Sequence record: PQ287644.1
Strand: one strand, 5' to 3'
Length of the DNA: 64,000 nucleotides
Shown: in pieces, positions 1 through 29,943 of the stretch
How the letters are laid out: each line of letters starts with the position of its first letter
Numbering within the stretch: the first letter of the stretch is position 1
The notes under the pieces: model-generated
Told to the model about the DNA's origin: nothing
Seen by the model: only the letters and a program-made list of their open reading frames with translations
Databases searched by the model: none
Position numbers and translations under genes: made by a program

Positions 1-3000
1 ATGACAGACGAACAAGACACATCCCTTTCCTATGCTAAATGGTTGGTTAAGTACCTGAGATGCAACAACCTACCCAAAGAACTGATTGATGATAAACGCC
101 TCCGTATTGATTGGGAGGCTCGAACAGACGATGAAACCCTTTTAGCTCACTTCAATGAAGACAGCTTAAGTGGTATTAAGACTGTTCGTTTTCTCAAGGA
201 CTTTTTCAACTACCAAGCGGGTTATGATCGGGAGACCCGGAATACCAGTTTCCTCAGAACCACCGAAGTGTTCAGGCAACAGGGGATCAATAACTTTTAC
301 TTTATCCTCCAATTGAACAATCCCCTGTTGAAAGGGGTGGATCCCTTTGATCCTAACCTCACTCCTGAGCAACAGGTGTGGGTCCTGGAGGAGTGTCGGA
401 GTAACTTTTGGTACTTCCTACGGGAAGTCTGCCGGTTAAAGCCGAATCAGCCCTTCTTAGCGAACCGGGGGAATATCAGTTTTATTTGGTCGTATTTGAA
501 TCACATTACCACCTACATGATCATGCCGCGGCAACAGGGTAAGCAGCAGCGGAACAGTGCTAAGGTTCGTATTGTACCTAAAGATACCCTGAAGACCATT
601 ACCCCTCAGGATACCTGGAAACGGATTGAACACCTACGGGTGGGGGATCGAGTCCTGGACCGTTCCGGGAAGCCGTGTCAGGTGATTGGTATTCATCCCC
701 AGGGTAAACGCCGGTTGTATCGTGTCATTACCAGTGATGGACGAGCTACAGACGTAGGGACTGAACATCTGTGGACCTTGAAGGATTATTCCAACTGCCT
801 CAATGGACGTGCACTCTGGAATGACTATTCGACCGTTGATGTCATTAACCTGTTGAAGAAGAAGGTGAAGCTTCAATTGCCGTTACCGGCTCCGGTACCC
901 GGGAGTGAACAGGACCTTCCTGTTGACCCGTACGTTCTCGGGTTGATCTATTGCGGACAAGATCAAGACGGTAAGGTTATTATCCCCACGCGTACGGATG
1001 CGGTTAAACAGTACGTAGTTGATCATCTCCCTCGGGGGGTAACAGTTATTCAGGGAGTGGCTAACAGTTGCTTAGAACGGACTGATAACCAACCTTATTT
1101 ATTCAACAGGGAACACGGTTTACCGGATCAATACCTAGAAGCCCCTTTAAACGCCCGGAGAGACCTCTTACAGGCGTTTTTAGACGTTAGGGGTAAGGTT
1201 GGTAGGGGTAAGGTCTTTATAGCCTTAAATCGCGTCCTAGGAGGTCAACTGGCGTATTTAGCCCGTAGTCTAGGTGGAACCGGTAAAGTCACCAAGAACG
1301 GAGTAGAGATTACCCTACCGGAAGAGGTACCTCCGTTCAAGTTCAGGGAAGAGAGTGTCGTCTTTGATAATCGGTTGCTGATCGACCGAGTGACCTTCGT
1401 AGGGGATGACGACTGTACCTGTATTGAAGTCGATAACAGTGAACAGTTGTATTTGACCGATGACTTCATTGTGACCCACAACACGGTATCGGTTCAGGTG
1501 ATTGACTTCTGGTTAACGTACATCATGGGCCGGGGGTATACGAGCCACTTGATTACCTTGAAGTCGGATAACCGAGCTCAGTTCATTGCGGCTATTAAAC
1601 AGATTCGGAGTTCAATTCCCTCGTATTTGATTAACTCGACCTACAAGGACAAGGATGCTGGTACCAGTCTGACCTACAAGGCCTTTGGGGAAGATAACGT
1701 TAATACGCTGTACATTAACGTCCCTCAGATCAGTCAGGATGCAGCAGGGGATCTCGGTCGGGGGTTACGGGTAGGGACTACCAACTACGATGAGTCCGGG
1801 TATATTCGGTTCATCGACACCATCATTGACGGGTGTTCCCCGTCCTCGCTAACGGAAATGGCGTTGTGTAGAGAGCAGGGGTTGCCGTATGGGATTACGC
1901 ACATTACGACCCCCAATACCACGCTCCATCCCAGCGGGGAGTTTATGTTCAATAAACTCATGAGTGCAACGGAGTGGCGGGAGAAGTTCTTTGATTGCTT
2001 CAGTGAGAGTCACTTGAGGCAGATGTTACTCAGGGCTTCCCCTACGAAGACAACCTCTCCGTCAGTCTCCATGGTGTACAATTACCTTCAACTGGGTAAG
2101 GACAAAGCCTGGGTGCGGGAAACCATTGACCTGCTAGGATTGAGTTTGGCGAAAGCCAAGATCGACTTATTGCTCATGTGGGTGGAAGATGGGGAGAATC
2201 GGTTGTTTGACGATGTGACCCGGGAATCCATTAACAACATGAAGCGGGACGTGGTGTGGAGTAAGGAGTATCGGGACTGTAACCTGTACGTGGACTTCTT
2301 TGTGACCCAACAGGAATTGTTGGAGATGGCAAAGAAGGAGTACAATGACCATTTCCTGATTGGTGTGGATACGTCCTCAGCCATTAACAAGGATGCCTGC
2401 ACCATTGTGATTCGCAGTATGAAGACGGGTAAGGTCATTGGGGTGGGACGATATCCCTTAACCTTCTTGGATGATGTCACAGCCATTGTTGTGGATTTGC
2501 TGGACGTGATTCAGAACAGCACCTTGATCATAGAGCGTAACTACGCACATCACATGATCGACAGTCTGTTGATTATGCTGCCGGCTAAGGGTATGGATCC
2601 CTTTAAACGGGTCTTTAACCAAATCTACCAAGACACCGTCAATAACGCTAAGGAGTTTGAGGAAGTCCAGAACACCAAATTTGCTTACCGGAATAAAGCG
2701 TTCTACCTGAAGTATAAACAATACTTCGGGTTCGTAACGACCAAGACCAGTCGGGAAGTCCTGTACGGCCTCATCCAAGAGGCGGTCGGGAATACCGGGT
2801 ACGGCCTCTGTTATGCGAAGCTCGCGGACGAATTGATCAACCTGAAACTCAAGGGGGATCGAATCGACCACGATGCGAAGCAGCACGATGACTTGGTCAT
2901 TGCGTGGCTACTGAGTTACTGGTTCATTAAGCTCGGGGAGAACAAGTCTTTGTACGGGATTCCTCCAGGGATTGCCTTAACGGACACCCGTAACTTACTG

Positions 3001-3267
3001 AACTCTGTTCAGAACCAAGGACGAACCGAGTATGAGCCGTACGTGGTTCAACTCATCGATAAAGTCCGGAGTAAGGTTCACAGCCTAACTGAAGAACTGA
3101 TGAGCACCCAGGACAATATCTTAGCACTTCGTCTAGAGGTGGAGATTCGGAAGTTAGCCAAGATGTTGCCTCCGGAACAGAATCGCATGATGACCATTGA
3201 CGTGCTGTTGGAGAACGCTAAAGTGGAACGCAACAAACGCCTACTGCAACAACGCAGAACAGCATAA
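1..3267 (+). CDS. terL: Terminase large subunit, interrupted by an intein
   Basis: Walker A PRQQGK|T is split by the intein. Walker B TTNYDE and nuclease-domain motif IGVDTS are present, and the later DHDAKQHDD segment fits terminase nucleases. Confidence 0.95.
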   Translation: MTDEQDTSLSYAKWLVKYLRCNNLPKELIDDKRLRIDWEARTDDETLLAHFNEDSLSGIKTVRFLKDFFNYQAGYDRETRNTSFLRTTEVFRQQGINNFYFILQLNNPLLKGVDPFDPNLTPEQQVWVLEECRSNFWYFLREVCRLKPNQPFLANRGNISFIWSYLNHITTYMIMPRQQGKQQRNSAKVRIVPKDTLKTITPQDTWKRIEHLRVGDRVLDRSGKPCQVIGIHPQGKRRLYRVITSDGRATDVGTEHLWTLKDYSNCLNGRALWNDYSTVDVINLLKKKVKLQLPLPAPVPGSEQDLPVDPYVLGLIYCGQDQDGKVIIPTRTDAVKQYVVDHLPRGVTVIQGVANSCLERTDNQPYLFNREHGLPDQYLEAPLNARRDLLQAFLDVRGKVGRGKVFIALNRVLGGQLAYLARSLGGTGKVTKNGVEITLPEEVPPFKFREESVVFDNRLLIDRVTFVGDDDCTCIEVDNSEQLYLTDDFIVTHNTVSVQVIDFWLTYIMGRGYTSHLITLKSDNRAQFIAAIKQIRSSIPSYLINSTYKDKDAGTSLTYKAFGEDNVNTLYINVPQISQDAAGDLGRGLRVGTTNYDESGYIRFIDTIIDGCSPSSLTEMALCREQGLPYGITHITTPNTTLHPSGEFMFNKLMSATEWREKFFDCFSESHLRQMLLRASPTKTTSPSVSMVYNYLQLGKDKAWVRETIDLLGLSLAKAKIDLLLMWVEDGENRLFDDVTRESINNMKRDVVWSKEYRDCNLYVDFFVTQQELLEMAKKEYNDHFLIGVDTSSAINKDACTIVIRSMKTGKVIGVGRYPLTFLDDVTAIVVDLLDVIQNSTLIIERNYAHHMIDSLLIMLPAKGMDPFKRVFNQIYQDTVNNAKEFEEVQNTKFAYRNKAFYLKYKQYFGFVTTKTSREVLYGLIQEAVGNTGYGLCYAKLADELINLKLKGDRIDHDAKQHDDLVIAWLLSYWFIKLGENKSLYGIPPGIALTDTRNLLNSVQNQGRTEYEPYVVQLIDKVRSKVHSLTEELMSTQDNILALRLEVEIRKLAKMLPPEQNRMMTIDVLLENAKVERNKRLLQQRRTA
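544..1482 (+). mobile_element. Class-3 intein (313 aa) in terL with degenerate LAGLIDADG domain
   Basis: Starts with Gln after QQGK and ends ...FIVTHN before Thr. WCT triad: TEHLW, CTCIEV, VTHN. Decayed endonuclease blocks YVLGLIYCG and LLQAFLDVRG. Confidence 0.93.
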
Positions 3268-3275
3268 GACCTGAC

Positions 3276-3306
3276 CCTCCTGGAGCCCCACAAGGGCTCC
3301 AGGAGG
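3276..3306. terminator. Hairpin between convergent genes, likely bidirectional terminator
   Basis: cctcctggagccc-cacaa-gggctccaggagg, a perfect 13-bp stem. Confidence 0.75.
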
Positions 3307-3360
3307 TATCGGGTTATTTCTGCTTCAGAAAGGGCGGTATAACCCACTTAGTTACAAGGG

Positions 3361-5931: not shown

Positions 5932-6490
5932 TTAAGGTAACCTCGTCTAACAAACCTTAACGGGATGTATAAACCCGTTAACTTAGGATTAGGGAATCAT
6001 AACATCTTCCAGTGATTCCTCATTCGGTTTCCATTATATGTTCCACTTACCCAATTCTCATTTTGGAGGAGGGGGTAAGATTCTTTAGGACTGAGCGACA
6101 TGAGCCTACGGCGAGTGGAGTGAAGGAGTAAAGAATCTTGGGGGAGGAGGCCCTACCGAAGGTAGAGTCCAGAGAAGAGAAAAGAGAAAATCCGAAGGAA
6201 AAACCTATTACTCCGTAATAGCTTTTGCTCTTTATATAAGCCCCGGAGGGGCTTATAAGGCAATAAAATTTAACTTTACTATTTATTATTATTATAGGAA
6301 ATTGCTTTTTTATTTAAAAAAGGAAAAATGAAGAGGAAATGAAAATGGGAAAATACCTTTTAAATATTCCCTAAATTTCATTTACTCTTAAAGAAGTACC
6401 CCTTTCAAAGTTAATTACCCCGACCGGCATTCCCGAACAGGGAAGCCGGCGTATAGGGTTTATAATGCAATACTGCAATAGGGTTAATGG
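5932..6490. other. AT-rich non-coding region with hairpins (candidate origin or divergent control region)
   Basis: Inverted repeats at 6077-6087/6129-6139, 6205-6221, 6235-6257 and 6424-6449; purine-rich tract 6165-6203; A/T-rich 6260-6400; no credible ORF. Confidence 0.45.
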
Positions 6491-6491
6491 A

Positions 6492-6509
6492 TTTCAGTTC
6501 TACATTATC
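6492..6509 (+). promoter_or_regulatory. Candidate phage early promoter (TTTyaaaCCtAyATTAtc motif)
   Basis: tttcagttctacattatc; divergent copy of a motif found 5 times in intergenic positions. Confidence 0.5.
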
Positions 6510-6580
6510 ATTGGGTAATGAAAGAATACGGTTATTCGTATTGATATGTTTTGTTAAACCCAGAAAAGGAAGAGTGTGTA

Positions 6581-7135
6581 ATGACAACGATTGCTTATCG
6601 TGACGGTATAATGGCAGCGGATACCCGGGTGGTCAACGGGGCCGATATGATCAACCTCGGAGAGCAACGTAAGATCCACGAACCGGGGGAAGGAGAGTAC
6701 TGGAGTGTCAATGGTGACCGTATTATCTGTTTTGGTTTGTCGGGGAGTCTGACGGATCTGTTGGCCTTTAAAGAACTGTTGAGTGAAGGGATTACCTTTA
6801 AGACCAAAGCACCTGACCACCTCGTTGGGGACTCGAATATGCTCTGTGTGGGTGAACAGGGTAATGTTTGGCTGGTTTCAGCATTTAAACAACGAGACGG
6901 GAGTATGGTGTTTACAGTGTCATGCGTACAACCCCCGTTTGCAATTGGATCGGGGGGTATTTACGCCAGTTCGGTGATGGCGGTGGGTAAAAGTGCGGTG
7001 GATGCAGTTAAAGTGGCGTGTAAGTTGGATATCTTTTCTGGCGGTCGTATTGATACCTGGGAACTCCCCCTATTCCAGAAACCCCCAGTAAGCGCCCTGA
7101 ACCGGCCGCCGATAAGACGGCAAAATAATCCCTAG
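6581..7135 (+). CDS. Proteasome beta/HslV-like N-terminal threonine (Ntn) hydrolase
   Basis: M-TTIAY start (Thr1 nucleophile), AADTR, RKIH, AIGSG and DIFSGG match beta-subunit catalytic motifs. RBS aaggaag precedes ATG 6581. Confidence 0.8.
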   Translation: MTTIAYRDGIMAADTRVVNGADMINLGEQRKIHEPGEGEYWSVNGDRIICFGLSGSLTDLLAFKELLSEGITFKTKAPDHLVGDSNMLCVGEQGNVWLVSAFKQRDGSMVFTVSCVQPPFAIGSGGIYASSVMAVGKSAVDAVKVACKLDIFSGGRIDTWELPLFQKPPVSALNRPPIRRQNNP

Positions 7136-7535
7136 GGGGTAAGACCCTCAGAATGTAGGCGATGGAAACTAGAGTGTGTAGGTATTTTATGCCGATGACC
7201 TGCATTCACTCCATCGCCGGTCCTGGTGGGAAGGTTAGGAGTGTTAGACACCCACCACCCCTCAACTGCCCAAGCCTATTCTGTCAGGCTTGAGAGGGTT
7301 GCCTACAAAACGCTCCGCCCCTCCAGCTCTATGTCACTATGATGTAGGGCTGGAGGTTTTACTTCTTTTGTTTTTTATTTACCCAGGAGGGGATATCTTA
7401 TACCGTTAAAGTGACCTGTTTCCACGCCATGGTTCTCTGGGTCACTGTAACGGTACAACGTTATTGATCCTCTTGGATGCGCTAACGGGTGGTGTTATGG
7501 TTATATCGGCGGTTGCCCACCCGTTAGTCTTTTTT
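7132..7535 (+). ncRNA. Candidate structured non-coding RNA(s) or regulatory leader
   Basis: Series of stems: 7158-7166/7210-7218, 7225-7230/7251-7256, 7263-7301, 7321-7355 plus U-tract, 7401-7416/7440-7455, about 7481-7528 plus U-tract; no convincing ORF. Confidence 0.4.
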
Positions 7536-7551
7536 TGATTACGCTAGATAA

Positions 7552-7569
7552 TTTGAAACCTAAATTATT
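7552..7569 (+). promoter_or_regulatory. Candidate phage early promoter upstream of phuZ
   Basis: tttgaaacctaaattatt. Confidence 0.65.
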
Positions 7570-7632
7570 AGCAGGCTATTGGAGAATAGTCTTTTTAATG
7601 ACTTCCCTGTAAACCAAAGAGAGCGATTCGAT

Positions 7633-8595
7633 ATGTCTCAGATTCAATACTACCTCATGGGCGGCGCAGGTATCAACATTGGCGCGGGTTTGAAAGAACA
7701 TTCCCGCACGCGCGTGAACAGTGATGCGGGGATGGTAGGTTTCGATACCAGTGATAAGAACTTCACTGCGGCGTTCCCCATTGAGCAACTCGAAGGGGTG
7801 AACGGGAGTGGTAAGGATTCCACCAAGCACTACGACAAACTCCTCCCCTTCGTAGCGGCTAACCTGAAGAAACACCGTCCCGGTGTTCACAACATCATCG
7901 TAGCCAGTACCGCTGGTGGTACTGGACGTGTTATGGCGATGATTGCGTTGCGCCTGCTGGTCGAGTCGGGTAAGAACGTCATTCTCTGTCTGATCTCGGA
8001 ACACACCTCCCTGGTGGATAAAGAGAACGCGGTTAACGCCCTCCGTTCCTTTGCCAACCAGTGCCAACCCAATCAACTGAACCGTCCGGTGTGCTACATG
8101 GAGTTCCTCAATACGCCGAACCTGACCCGTAAGGAAGTCAACCTTCAGGCGATTGATTCACTGAATCTCCTGAGTCTCCTCTTTGATCCCGGTAATACGG
8201 AAATCGATGAGGAAGACATTAAACGCTTCTTCAATTACTCGGCGGGGGGTAAAACCAGGCCGGCGTTGAGTCGTATTCATTTCTACGACCAGGATGGTGC
8301 AGCGGACTATACCGGTAAGGTACCGGTCTCGGTCGCCAGCCTGTACCCGAACAACGATGACGTGGTTCCTCGGTTTATGGGATCGGTTTACCGGACGACG
8401 GGTATCTTCTCCCCCAACAGTGATCGTCCGGAGGACATCAAAGAGCTGCACGTGACCCTCGATCACGGTGAAGCCCTGGAAGAACTGGAGAAAGAGATCG
8501 AAGGGCTGGAAACGGTTCAAGCTCAAGCTGCCGTTGACTTCTCTCAGCAGAAGGACATTTCGGAAGGATCGAACGATCTGGGCTTCATGCTGTAA
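7633..8595 (+). CDS. phuZ: PhuZ phage tubulin
   Basis: GGAGINIG, GSGKD and STAGGTG tubulin/FtsZ motifs; acidic-hydrophobic C-terminal tail; likely start MSQIQ at 7633. Confidence 0.93.
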   Translation: MSQIQYYLMGGAGINIGAGLKEHSRTRVNSDAGMVGFDTSDKNFTAAFPIEQLEGVNGSGKDSTKHYDKLLPFVAANLKKHRPGVHNIIVASTAGGTGRVMAMIALRLLVESGKNVILCLISEHTSLVDKENAVNALRSFANQCQPNQLNRPVCYMEFLNTPNLTRKEVNLQAIDSLNLLSLLFDPGNTEIDEEDIKRFFNYSAGGKTRPALSRIHFYDQDGAADYTGKVPVSVASLYPNNDDVVPRFMGSVYRTTGIFSPNSDRPEDIKELHVTLDHGEALEELEKEIEGLETVQAQAAVDFSQQKDISEGSNDLGFML

Positions 8596-8610
8596 GACAG
8601 ACAGTGAATC

Positions 8611-8652
8611 GCTAAGGTAGGGAGCTCACGCTCCCTACCTTAGCCTTTATTA
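8611..8652 (+). terminator. Rho-independent terminator after phuZ
   Basis: gctaaggtagggagc-tcac-gctccctaccttagc followed by ctttatta. Confidence 0.85.
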
Positions 8653-8733
8653 CGCTTTGGGGTATTTTTTATAATGGGTTTTTACTGAAATGGGCATTAT
8701 TATACAGGCTTAATTAAATATAGGGGCTAGAAG

Positions 8734-9027
8734 GTGGCTATAAGCTTCTCTGTTGATTTATCAAGGGGTTACCTATACCGACCTACCGGTCCAGGTAAAA
8801 ACGTCGTGTTAAGGAAAATAGACCGGTTTGACGTGGTGCACTGTTTACAGGCGTTAGGGTACCACAACCTTAACGAACGCAGTCTGAATCGTCGAGCCGC
8901 GGTCTTTATTCCGTCTCTGGAGGAGGACATCACGAAATTCACGATCGGTGTACCGAGTGATGCACAGGTTCGTATTCGTGGGATTGGGAAGTGCTCCCAA
9001 CGGTTATTGATTACATTTGTTTATTAA
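8734..9027 (+). CDS. Hypothetical protein
   Basis: 97-aa ORF with GTG start, first gene of a small-gene run. Confidence 0.55.
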   Translation: MAISFSVDLSRGYLYRPTGPGKNVVLRKIDRFDVVHCLQALGYHNLNERSLNRRAAVFIPSLEEDITKFTIGVPSDAQVRIRGIGKCSQRLLITFVY

Positions 9028-24935: not shown

Positions 24936-24958
24936 GGTCTATTCGTTTGGTTAGAATA

Positions 24959-24976
24959 TTTTAAACCTACATTATC
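24959..24976 (+). promoter_or_regulatory. Candidate early promoter
   Basis: ttttaaacctacattatc. Confidence 0.7.
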
Positions 24977-28052: not shown

Positions 28053-29489
28053 ATGCACGAAACCAATGAACTGAACAAACTGTACGAAGCGATGTGTTTG
28101 TCGTGGGGCGCGCAGGTTAAAGAACAGGGACGACTCGTCTTTATGATCGATGGGGAAGAATTCCCACTCCGTATTGATGGGATGACCCTCCACCTTCCGC
28201 TGAGCGAAGTCCTGGATGGGAACTGCGTGGATAAGGTCTTCTTCCACCCGGCCTGTGAAAACATCGTGTCGAAAGAAACGGAAGTGTTCAAGATCATCCG
28301 GCGGATGACCTGTATGAAACTGCTGGATACCTTCCGTCGTATTCCGATGGTGTTGTTCACCGTTGCAGGCCATAAGCCCAAGAGCACCTGGAACCAACGC
28401 ATCCATGACATGCTGGAGCCCCTTAAAGGCACCAAGCGCGCGGTACGGGATGAACTCAACGCATTGTTCAGCCGTATGCATGTGGAAGTGGAAGAGAATG
28501 GGTTGGATAACCGTTTCATTCACTTCAAGGTATCTAAGGGCGGTGGTACCAGCAAGACCACGGGTCAACGGATCTATTACAAGACCCGTCCGGAGTTTCC
28601 GTTCTATACGGAAATCGTTCGTCGTCTGGCACGTTCGGATGGTCAATCGGATAACCAGACCATTGAAATCAATAACCACACGGTCTCCCGAGCAGCACTT
28701 CGTCTGGCCGCCCATATCTTCCAGAACGTCCTCCCGGCGGTGAACAGTCCCAGTGACTATGAGTTTGAATCGACTTCCCCGGTGGCGTCTCGTCTAGTGT
28801 CCTACATGGGGTGCTATGCGGAAATCGCAGATCAATTGAATAAGATCCAGAATACCTTCCGATCTGATTTCGATAAAGCCGGGTTGTACCCGATTGATCT
28901 GAGCTGGACGGAACGCCTGGAAGAACTACCGGATATTTATCGCCAAGTCCCAGTACTGGATTACAACAGCCACAACACCCATGATGAAGTCCAGCATCAA
29001 GCAGTGAGTCGGAATGACATGGGTGGTCTGCTGTCGGTTACCAGTACCAACCAACAGGGTGTTTCTCAACATCAATCCCAACCGCAGCACGTTGCAGGAA
29101 TGGGTGGGGACTATGACGTATCGCCTCCGCAGATGCAAGCGGGAGACCGGTATGTCCGTACGGAGATCGATTATGTCGGTCAGCGCGTCCTCCACCATGC
29201 GATTAACCAAACCACCAATAACCCGGTCGTCTACATCTGTAGTCGTAAAGGGAACTTCCTGCAACGCTCTGAAACCAACATGATGCTTCAGCAAATGGGT
29301 ATGTTGGGTGGGATGGGTAGTATGATGGGTGGAACGATGCTGGCCAATGGGATGGTTCAACTGCCGAACGGCATGATCGTGAATCCGCAGATGATGGGGG
29401 GTGTTTCGATGCCTACGCCTACCGCGACACCGAGTGTATACCCGGACACCGGTATGGGGTTTGACCTGGGAGCCCCAGGTATCTTCTAA
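28053..29489 (+). CDS. Conserved protein (position of phiKZ gp70) with Met/Gly-rich C-terminal tail
   Basis: 478 aa; GAGG RBS; low-complexity tail MMLQQMGMLGGMGSMMGG... Confidence 0.75.
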   Translation: MHETNELNKLYEAMCLSWGAQVKEQGRLVFMIDGEEFPLRIDGMTLHLPLSEVLDGNCVDKVFFHPACENIVSKETEVFKIIRRMTCMKLLDTFRRIPMVLFTVAGHKPKSTWNQRIHDMLEPLKGTKRAVRDELNALFSRMHVEVEENGLDNRFIHFKVSKGGGTSKTTGQRIYYKTRPEFPFYTEIVRRLARSDGQSDNQTIEINNHTVSRAALRLAAHIFQNVLPAVNSPSDYEFESTSPVASRLVSYMGCYAEIADQLNKIQNTFRSDFDKAGLYPIDLSWTERLEELPDIYRQVPVLDYNSHNTHDEVQHQAVSRNDMGGLLSVTSTNQQGVSQHQSQPQHVAGMGGDYDVSPPQMQAGDRYVRTEIDYVGQRVLHHAINQTTNNPVVYICSRKGNFLQRSETNMMLQQMGMLGGMGSMMGGTMLANGMVQLPNGMIVNPQMMGGVSMPTPTATPSVYPDTGMGFDLGAPGIF

Positions 29490-29505
29490 GCAACAATAAC
29501 CTTAC

Positions 29506-29537
29506 CAGTACCTAGCGGGATATCCCGCTAGGTACTG
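29506..29537. terminator. Bidirectional terminator hairpin
   Basis: cagtacctagcggga-ta-tcccgctaggtactg between convergent genes. Confidence 0.75.
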
Positions 29538-29564
29538 TGTTTTCTCTATTTTATTCCAGTATTT

Positions 29565-29894
29565 TTACGCTTGGGTCGTATTACTACGTGCAACGGCCTG
29601 GGTCAAATGGGCCTCGTCAATTATCTTGTAACTTTGCATGCCCGCACAATCCATAAAGGGATCTTCAATCCCATTCAGATAGGCGGTGACCCACAGCATA
29701 TGGTTTTCAACCCCTTGAACCCTCAGGAATCGATAGAAGTCATACCGATAAGCGTACAGTTGTGCGTGAGAGACGATTGGAATCTCCTGGGTTTGACGGA
29801 GGAGTATTTCCCGTTCGGACCGCACCAAGACTTTGAACCGTTCAGTAAAGAAGAAATCACGTCCTTCACTGAAGTTAACAATAGACAGTGGCAT
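29565..29894 (-). CDS. Small hypothetical protein, possibly LysM-like baseplate component
   Basis: 109 aa; LYAYRYDF...LWVTAYLNGIEDP loosely resembles T4 gp53/LysM wedge proteins. Confidence 0.55.
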   Translation of the reverse strand: MPLSIVNFSEGRDFFFTERFKVLVRSEREILLRQTQEIPIVSHAQLYAYRYDFYRFLRVQGVENHMLWVTAYLNGIEDPFMDCAGMQSYKIIDEAHLTQAVARSNTTQA

Positions 29895-29925
29895 GGAGAA
29901 GATCCTTATCGATGCAGCTAACCAT

Positions 29926-29943
29926 TTTTGAACCTATATTATC
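29926..29943 (+). promoter_or_regulatory. Candidate early promoter upstream of nvRNAP beta-C
   Basis: ttttgaacctatattatc. Confidence 0.7.

Follow-up and report, generated by a model that had tools for sequence, protein, structure and literature searches.

A predicted two-module structured RNA upstream of phuZ in phages of the EL clade

Introduction

Nucleus-forming jumbo phages, in which transcription is separated from translation, serve as models of viral cell biology and as therapeutics in development, and their non-coding RNAs (ncRNAs) are almost unexplored. A few candidates come from phiKZ, for which ONT-cappable-seq gave 17 that derive from untranslated regions (UTRs) (bioRxiv 10.1101/2023.10.13.562163) and Grad-seq gave two (PMC8545117); they are short, abundant and bounded by terminators (bioRxiv 10.1101/2023.10.13.562163; PMC8545117), and they rest on transcript data, with neither an assigned function nor a comparative structure. 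The RNA element considered here belongs to this known kind, the structured and terminator-bounded phage ncRNAs, within which it is a new family. It occupies a 497-nucleotide (nt) gap, positions 7136-7632, between a gene for an HslV-family peptidase and the tubulin gene phuZ in Pseudomonas phage HHBS8_1 (PQ287644.1), an EL-like nucleus-forming jumbo phage (Elvirus, Chimalliviridae) with a genome of 211.7 kb. The first 64 kb of that genome (64,000 nt) constitute the window that was analysed, and positions are given within it.

Like the phiKZ ncRNAs, the element is from a nucleus-forming Pseudomonas jumbo phage and is a short structured intergenic RNA that has a terminator at its end, adjoins a protein gene and is without a credible small open reading frame (ORF). 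It differs in that the case for it is built on covariation and in having a pseudoknot core, none being described for the phiKZ candidates. Two covariance models of it, R1 and R3, find no match in the neighbourhood of phiKZ phuZ (L032), the one phiKZ locus searched, where the gap upstream of phuZ is 50 nt. The phiKZ ncRNA 'p40' was considered as a positional counterpart and rejected, as it is not adjacent to phuZ.

Two other systems are comparable in layout. A preprint summarises ncRNA1 and ncRNA2 of phage PAK_P3 as two abundant tandem small RNAs of ~210 and ~120 nt (bioRxiv 10.1101/2023.10.13.562163), sizes and an arrangement similar to those of the two modules, 1 and 2, described below. PAK_P3 is of an unrelated phage family, the evidence for its RNAs is experimental and no conserved pseudoknot is reported for them; the likeness is one of layout. 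In Escherichia coli the small RNAs (sRNAs) rrA, rrB and rrF of rrn operons lie between dual terminators and arise when the first is read through (PMC8144298). Module 2, between terminators T1 and T2, has the same geometry, but the bacterial RNAs are from a ribosomal locus of unrelated sequence, and T1 read-through is merely hinted at in the phage.

The architecture of module 1 also resembles that of several riboswitches, preQ1-II, SAM-II, fluoride and ZTP, whose aptamers are H-type pseudoknots followed by terminators. Shared features are the a-b-a'-b' order of the helix strands, invariant junction nucleotides, an A-rich strand by the 3′ arm and a terminator immediately after; unlike them, module 1 is without an Rfam match, a conserved antiterminator or a regulated ORF before the next terminator. 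A further phage-encoded structured RNA is the phi29 pRNA (RF00044), a packaging RNA of ~170 nt that acts in trans within a protein machine and is encoded near one end of the genome map. The element differs from it in fold, in lacking an Rfam match and in that no evidence ties it to packaging.

A preliminary description, made from the sequence alone, had pointed to the gap as the site of one or more novel ncRNAs, a reading that the comparative work supports, and had recognised no known family. Concordantly, Rfam 15 at gathering thresholds gave no matches with the whole window or with the loci of six relatives, and what appeared below threshold in a permissive search (E up to 10) was mutually unrelated and did not recur between relatives. 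ARAGORN found no tRNA or tmRNA in the window.

A conserved pseudoknot core in module 1

When all phage records were searched with the gap by BLASTN, 10 EL-like genomes alone matched, at 96-100% identity; neither RisingSun nor FishSpeaker nor any other part of the window resembles the gap sequence. A search for related loci by PhuZ alone gave just EL itself; a PhuZ protein search brought in metagenomic homologues of 44-67% identity. Eleven distinct relatives, mostly metagenomic, have a gene-free gap of 384-561 nt immediately upstream of phuZ and, ahead of it, two or three tandem HslV-family paralogs. Alignment with these relatives gives near-invariant blocks between hairpins of differing sequence whose arms are still complementary, and the same modules are retained in nine to ten of the eleven. 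The comparisons establish that the gap encodes RNA of the + strand, by its conservation functional, in two modules under purifying selection.

Module 1 (~7221-7375) has an H-type pseudoknot, an inserted hairpin domain, three invariant unpaired motifs (AGGUUAGG, UCUGUC and UUGCCUACAAAAC) and an intrinsic terminator (Table 1). Helix S2 has a loop that begins with AGGUUAGG, after which comes the 5′ pseudoknot strand; the two helices, S2 and that of the pseudoknot, are in a-b-a'-b' order and each has independent support. Within the long loop between the pseudoknot strands sits a domain in which helix S3o encloses hairpin S3i. The terminator, T1, begins three nt downstream of the 3′ pseudoknot arm.

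Support for this fold comes first from R1, a covariance model of three EL-like sequences with nested helices only, whose matches to module 1 comprise nine relatives, with E values from 1e-22 to 4e-10, and additionally a 238-kb IMG/VR contig. It gave no match in RisingSun, contig L030, FishSpeaker or the phiKZ phuZ region, and none in ~1.5 Mb of control loci in which the two anchor motifs occur together by chance. Members score 82-157 bits with the refined model, R3. In the module 1 alignment 96% of the paired-column cells form standard pairs and compensatory changes are present at 31 of the 35 nested pairs; the covariation score is 0.717, versus 0.238 +/- 0.022 when shuffled (0/500) and at most 0.163 with the partners slid. 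RNAalifold on plain MAFFT alignments proved unsuited because the stems covary out of register, and the EL-seeded model was used instead together with arm-swap tests, in which each 5′ arm is paired with the 3′ arm of every lineage, independently of the columns fitted by the model. For the pseudoknot the cognate duplex energy in the first run was -119.3 kcal/mol as against -93.7 +/- 5.8 kcal/mol for non-cognate combinations, a difference reached in 0 of 20000 permutations. The helix exists as GGAGG/CCUCC, GGGAG/CUCCC, GGAAG/CUUCC, GGGGGAG/CUCCCCC, GGAGGC/GCCUCC and GGAGUGUU/AACGCUCC.

All six of the stems that had been listed from the sequence are present where they were placed, and the strong covariation in relatives is the outcome of a check that was proposed along with them. 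The pseudoknot is an addition to that list. The third stem needs correction, since relatives do not conserve its outer caac/gttg pairing and have CCCUC/GAGGG, helix S3o, instead. The first stem, hairpin H1, is real in the EL group, where U-G has changed to C-G and A-U to G-U, and has no counterpart as a helix in relatives: there a conserved UAUGUGAACCUCGUGG replaces it and the 5′ domain has no helix covariation (arm-swap p = 0.54). In its UAUG, UAUGUGAACCUCGUGG resembles phiKZ late promoters, whose core is T-3ATG+1 (PMC7598289). It is treated merely as a possible transcription start or processing site because it occurs once per locus and EL-likes carry AAUG instead.

Module 2 and the phuZ promoter

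Module 2 (~7393-7536) has a conserved AU-rich leader, AUAUCUUAUACC, a long hairpin (H5) with an invariant loop, a small hairpin (H6) and a second terminator, T2, and this order is the same in the individual folds of nine relatives. The division into two units, each closed by a hairpin with a U tract, had been anticipated from the sequence, and the relatives keep it. AUAUCUUAUACC is found once in the window and may be a transcription start or processing site; neither it nor the relatives' 5′ motif qualifies as a repeated promoter, since there are no repeats of them in the window or the loci. An AGGAGG upstream of the leader, noticed earlier as lacking a start codon, is indeed present at 7385-7390, and relatives do not conserve it. 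The apical part of H5 holds the invariant CACGCCAUGGUUC (7426-7438), and at its base UACCG/CGGUA becomes UACCA/UGGUG in relatives. Arm-swap tests gave -177.3 for cognate H5 arms versus -127.5 +/- 10.9 (p = 5e-5), and -179.1 versus -105.9 +/- 12.1 for T2 (0 of 20000 permutations). The EL-seeded model of module 2, R2, reaches relatives weakly (E 1e-5 to 0.5), because sequence divergence is higher in module 2; its matches are always at the syntenic spot.

T1 and T2 each combine a G+C-rich hairpin with a U tract, kept in relatives, and are predicted to be intrinsic terminators; a terminator scan found two terminator-like hairpins, 7320-7356 and 7508-7525, each followed by a T run. Downstream of both is the phage promoter motif of phuZ. 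The original EL annotation marks a 'putative phage promoter' at the position equivalent to this motif, ATTTGAAACCTAAATTAT. The promoter motif ATTTKAAACCTAMATTAT has three copies in the 64 kb (7551-7568, 24958-24975 and 29925-29942) where 0.2 would be expected, and upstream of phuZ it is conserved in all relatives, RisingSun included.

Table 1. Features of the gap and its flanking genes. Stem numbers are those of the preliminary description; MFE, minimum free energy; z, arm-swap z score.
Feature	Position	Strand	Basis and remarks
HslV-family peptidase gene	6581-7135	+	PQ287644.1 annotation; upstream neighbour
Hairpin H1 (stem 1)	7158-7218; arms 7158-7166/7210-7218, inner helix 7177-7183/7198-7204	+	Inverted repeat and MFE fold; EL group only
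Helix S2 (stem 2)	7225-7230/7251-7256	+	Found in sequence; 6/6 pairs changed on both sides; z -5.4
Pseudoknot helix	7238-7245/7309-7316	+	z -4.5
Helix S3o	7259-7263/7294-7298	+	3/5 pairs changed on both sides; z -4.3
Hairpin S3i (stem 3, inner helix)	7271-7277/7286-7292	+	Found in sequence; 7/7 pairs changed on both sides; conserved UCUGUC in loop
Invariant single strand UUGCCUACAAAAC	7299-7311	+	Alignments; A-rich end enters the pseudoknot helix (3′ strand)
Predicted intrinsic terminator T1 (stem 4)	7320-7356, 17-bp stem; U-rich tail to ~7380	+	Terminator scan, inverted repeat; 15/17 pairs changed on both sides; z -7.8
AU-rich leader AUAUCUUAUACC	7393-7404	+	Alignment; follows a U-rich spacer; final bases form the base of H5
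Long hairpin H5 (stem 5)	7401-7417/7439-7455 (stem 5: 7398-7416/7440-7458)	+	Relatives' folds, arm-swap (stem 5: inverted repeat)
Small hairpin H6	7467-7470/7475-7478	+	Predicted in each relative's own fold, with differing sequence
Predicted intrinsic terminator T2 (stem 6)	7481-7492/7517-7528, 12-bp outer stem; T7 run, to 7536 (stem 6: 7482-7492/7517-7527, then T7)	+	Terminator scan, inverted repeat
Putative phuZ phage promoter motif ATTTGAAACCTAAATTAT	7551-7568	+	Annotated in EL record; downstream of T1 and T2
phuZ (tubulin)	7633-8595	+	Downstream neighbour

RNA of the + strand, not protein or DNA signal

Folding energy alone gives the gap an MFE of -186.9 kcal/mol versus -143.8 +/- 6.7 in dinucleotide shuffles (z -6.45) on the + strand. 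The reverse strand folds about equally (z -6.25), which is what would be expected of an element that works as DNA, such as inverted repeats bound by protein, a cruciform, or a replication or packaging site, and a terminase gene is ~4 kb away. What makes a DNA element very improbable is the type of change that the stems accept. The presence of G-U pairs had earlier been taken as a sign of structure at the RNA level, and across relatives the stem cells comprise 38 G-U or U-G and 4 A-C or C-A; therefore the functional strand is the + strand and the molecule is RNA, as tolerance of the former and not of the latter is expected only for + strand RNA. The U tracts after the hairpins are furthermore on the + strand only, and the pseudoknot is without an equivalent in duplex DNA. 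Changes within the EL-likes are similar in kind, in-stem substitutions being mostly U-G to C-G, A-U to G-U and U-G to U-A, tolerable in + strand RNA, with one that disrupts a base pair of H5. Among the six EL-likes compared, 3.8% of the gap columns vary versus ~10% (184/1820) of third codon positions in eight neighbouring genes, and 7541-7632, with the promoter and 5′ UTR, is free of substitutions.

When the window is scanned as 150-nt segments, 7236-7385 (z -5.3) ranks 9th and 7386-7535 (z -3.8) 20th of 426, and so the gap is strongly structured yet not unique in the genome, several other intergenic spots equalling or exceeding it. Further very strong folders are 3186-3335 (z -7.8), at the end of the terminase gene, and 29436-29585 (z -6.6). 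Another is 6036-6185 (z -7.2, second of the 426), in a divergent gene-free region of 649 nt, 5932-6580, that is AT-rich with many inverted repeats and three tiny auto-annotated ORFs; 3.7% of its columns vary among EL-likes, and a regulatory or ncRNA function is possible for it as well.

That short peptides might be encoded, with the stems incidental, was recognised at the outset as a way in which a non-coding reading could fail, and newer automatic annotations of four EL-like records do have ORFs of 43 amino acids (7162-7293) and 36 amino acids (7299-7409) in the gap. Stop-free + strand stretches of 91-137 codons also occur in the gaps of some relatives. The substitutions, however, are not those of genes. 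The sites that differ among EL-likes are distributed 2/2/3 and 1/2/3 among the three codon positions of the two ORFs, and the gap mismatches of relatives are even over the three phases, without 3-periodicity; just 34 of 174 indels (20%) are multiples of 3. phuZ in the same pairs has a third-position excess and indels mostly in frame. Peptide similarity of the translated gaps occurs in all frames, equally on the minus strand, jumps from frame to frame and never joins EL to any relative, so that no single-frame peptide emerges. A gene caller finds no gene in the gaps of the eleven relatives, and the original EL annotation has none here. Real small proteins are consequently next to negligible as an explanation, the gap is non-coding, and the 'hypothetical protein' calls in several records are probably wrong.

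Expression and mode of action

Among the papers searched there was no transcript study of EL and no description of the element. The public runs that contain the gap sequence are available as assembled contigs only, and four were compared with the region. One of them, X24, recorded as transcriptomic with ~6 Mb of contigs, has two pieces within 6400-8800, one at 7173-7389 with a depth of 7.5 and one at 7642-7850, in phuZ, with a depth of 3.9; coverage is zero on the protease gene and on module 2. This is compatible, weakly and without strand specificity, with module 1 RNA being no less abundant than the phuZ message and with a degree of transcription past T1 as far as the leader. The contig would also fit, though not decisively, a short UTR-derived transcript of the phiKZ type that ends at a terminator.

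The best explanation overall, with a probability of roughly 0.55, is that the locus specifies one or two stable ncRNAs that act in trans, as opposed to a switch controlling phuZ. Transcripts that leave the HslV gene or genes, or that begin at an unrecognised start close to the conserved 5′ motif, would stop at T1 and give a stable RNA of roughly 150-220 nt; continuation of the HslV peptidase transcript into module 1 is probable. Read-through of T1, or else a start or cleavage at the AUAUCUUAUACC leader, would end at T2 and yield a second RNA of ~140 nt, and phuZ would be transcribed separately from its own conserved promoter downstream of T2. Both RNAs would then act in trans, with the pseudoknot core and invariant loops forming a surface to which a protein or some other RNA would bind. 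Such a recognition surface is proposed because hairpins alone would suffice for insulation or 3′ protection, yet the unpaired motifs are invariant and the pseudoknot is kept.

Several features of the locus would also suit a more modest function, that of a 3′ UTR of the HslV operon acting in cis, which would protect its message from exonucleases and, by means of tandem terminators, insulate the phuZ promoter without there being any separate RNA function. In every relative the modules are directly after the last HslV gene, good terminators close both of them and the phuZ promoter comes immediately after T2. FishSpeaker, where HslV and phuZ are presumably co-transcribed, lacks the element, and the RNA-seq contig is without a clear 5′ start. 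Left unexplained are the invariance of the unpaired AGGUUAGG, UCUGUC, UUGCCUACAAAAC and CACGCCAUGGUUC, and the covarying pseudoknot that is kept down to ~44-50% PhuZ identity; coverage by X24 of module 1 and not of the protease gene is a further difficulty. A purely cis-acting 3′ end is accordingly regarded as rather unlikely.

The conservation in module 1 is of the type seen in riboswitches, with covarying helices around invariant junctions and a pseudoknot with an A-rich strand, and a terminator only 3 nt downstream of the core. Since conditional termination is widespread in phiKZ 5′ UTRs (bioRxiv 10.1101/2023.10.13.562163) and the RNA-seq contig runs past T1, attenuation needs to be kept in mind, the core binding a metabolite or protein and thereby setting the efficiency of T1 and so read-through to module 2 and phuZ. 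Five alternative pairings of the core with one or other T1 arm were examined for an antiterminator, and their arm-swap z scores, -0.9 to +1.2, are to be compared with -4.3 to -7.8 for the real helices; no conserved alternative pairing was found. T1 is not directly followed by a gene to regulate in the same transcript, module 2, T2 and then the phuZ promoter coming next, and with T2 and a dedicated promoter in place phuZ would gain little from read-through. There is also no Rfam riboswitch match, sub-threshold ones included. The lack of a conserved antiterminator, the second terminator and the separate promoter together argue against a classical phuZ attenuator, and a riboswitch-like device at T1 is quite unlikely. 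Among the options first put forward, phage sRNAs, an attenuator or switch, and a protein-binding scaffold, the classical terminator/antiterminator switch is thus disfavoured.

A number of observations weigh against trans-acting RNAs. No promoter is recognised for module 1 or module 2, and EL-likes have another sequence in place of the 5′ motif that relatives conserve. A search of the 64-kb window and of the relatives' 9-kb loci gave no conserved complementary target sites, and any target would therefore be elsewhere in the phage or in the host. Three of the four 'RNA' runs resemble DNA libraries, with even depth and adaptor remnants, so RNA support is a single low-depth contig set, and its contig extends ~10 nt beyond the U-rich tail of T1. 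The lineage of L023 and L024 has lost most of module 2, having just the leader and a short H5 leading straight into a U tract, and module 1 of L028 is strongly diverged (20 bits in a local search). Finally, the pair counts come from an alignment that the model had fitted to the structure, which is the reason that the arm-swap tests were added.

Distribution and neighbouring genes

As far as the sequence comparisons reach, the element is confined to one lineage, the EL clade. Shewanella phage FishSpeaker (PhuZ 40%) has 16 nt between HslV and phuZ and no element. Its only R3 match, of 20 bits (L012:1243-1360), comprises a hairpin and terminator without the family motifs and was not accepted as a member; FishSpeaker also has a 667-nt gene-free stretch, L012:754-1420, upstream of its HslV-phuZ cluster. 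Erwinia phage RisingSun and contig L030 (PhuZ 44-45%) have a different conserved gene-free stretch upstream of phuZ (L011:2345-3000; L030:2757-4000), moderately structured (z -2.9) and without a match to Rfam, R1 or R3.

Wider searches were largely unproductive. A loose two-anchor DNA pattern, run on viral and metagenome collections, gave ~240 chance loci, three of which the model accepted; tighter anchor patterns added one match, a false one inside an ORF. Genome contigs yielded 76 chance loci on scanning, none scoring above 25 bits, and a weak model match in the window itself (309-425, minus strand) is antisense within the terminase gene and was rejected.

Two of the records deserve comment. 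vB_PQ1 (L004; PQ516283.1) has a 77-nt tandem duplication from S3i to T1 in module 1 and a split phuZ, and the record, 184 kb with 488 features, appears poorly assembled. MIZ-Pa99 (L005/L016; PV472050.1) has Straboviridae in its taxonomy line despite ~98% identity to phage EL here.

The HslV gene is the most variable of the nearby genes among EL-likes, with 9.3% of its columns varying and many of these at first and second codon positions. Its C-terminus is altered by indels at 7069 and 7134, and the other EL-likes match residues 1-169 of the 184 only. EL-likes have one such gene; the two or three tandem paralogs upstream of the RNA region in relatives (L018:1599-3519, L021:1681-3524, L025:1560-3513 and others) have ~25-40% mutual identity. 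Directly 3′ of phuZ, at 8611-8644, is a perfect 15-bp hairpin with a 4-nt loop, likely the phuZ terminator (z -5.8 for 8586-8735).

Significance

What is new here is the presence of a pseudoknot and of invariant loops, the correction to the outer pairing of the third stem and the finding that the first is lineage-specific. The element has a fold backed by covariation, a fixed locus beside the spindle gene and a lineage-wide presence, and it can be studied with phage EL in a tractable host, P. aeruginosa. A seed alignment for the new RNA family is supplied, and the antisense-oligomer and Cas13 tools now usable in these phages have in the element a concrete target.

A bolder proposal, which we consider unlikely on present evidence, is that module 1 represents a pseudoknot RNA of a new class, sensing a ligand or a protein, or else the RNA subunit of a phage ribonucleoprotein, and that it is specific to the EL clade and needed for efficient infection, with module 2 as its partner sRNA. 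If that were so, expression of the HslV-like protease or of the PhuZ spindle might be tied to the state of the cell, and the RNA could possibly serve as a decoy against host defence or the host translation machinery.

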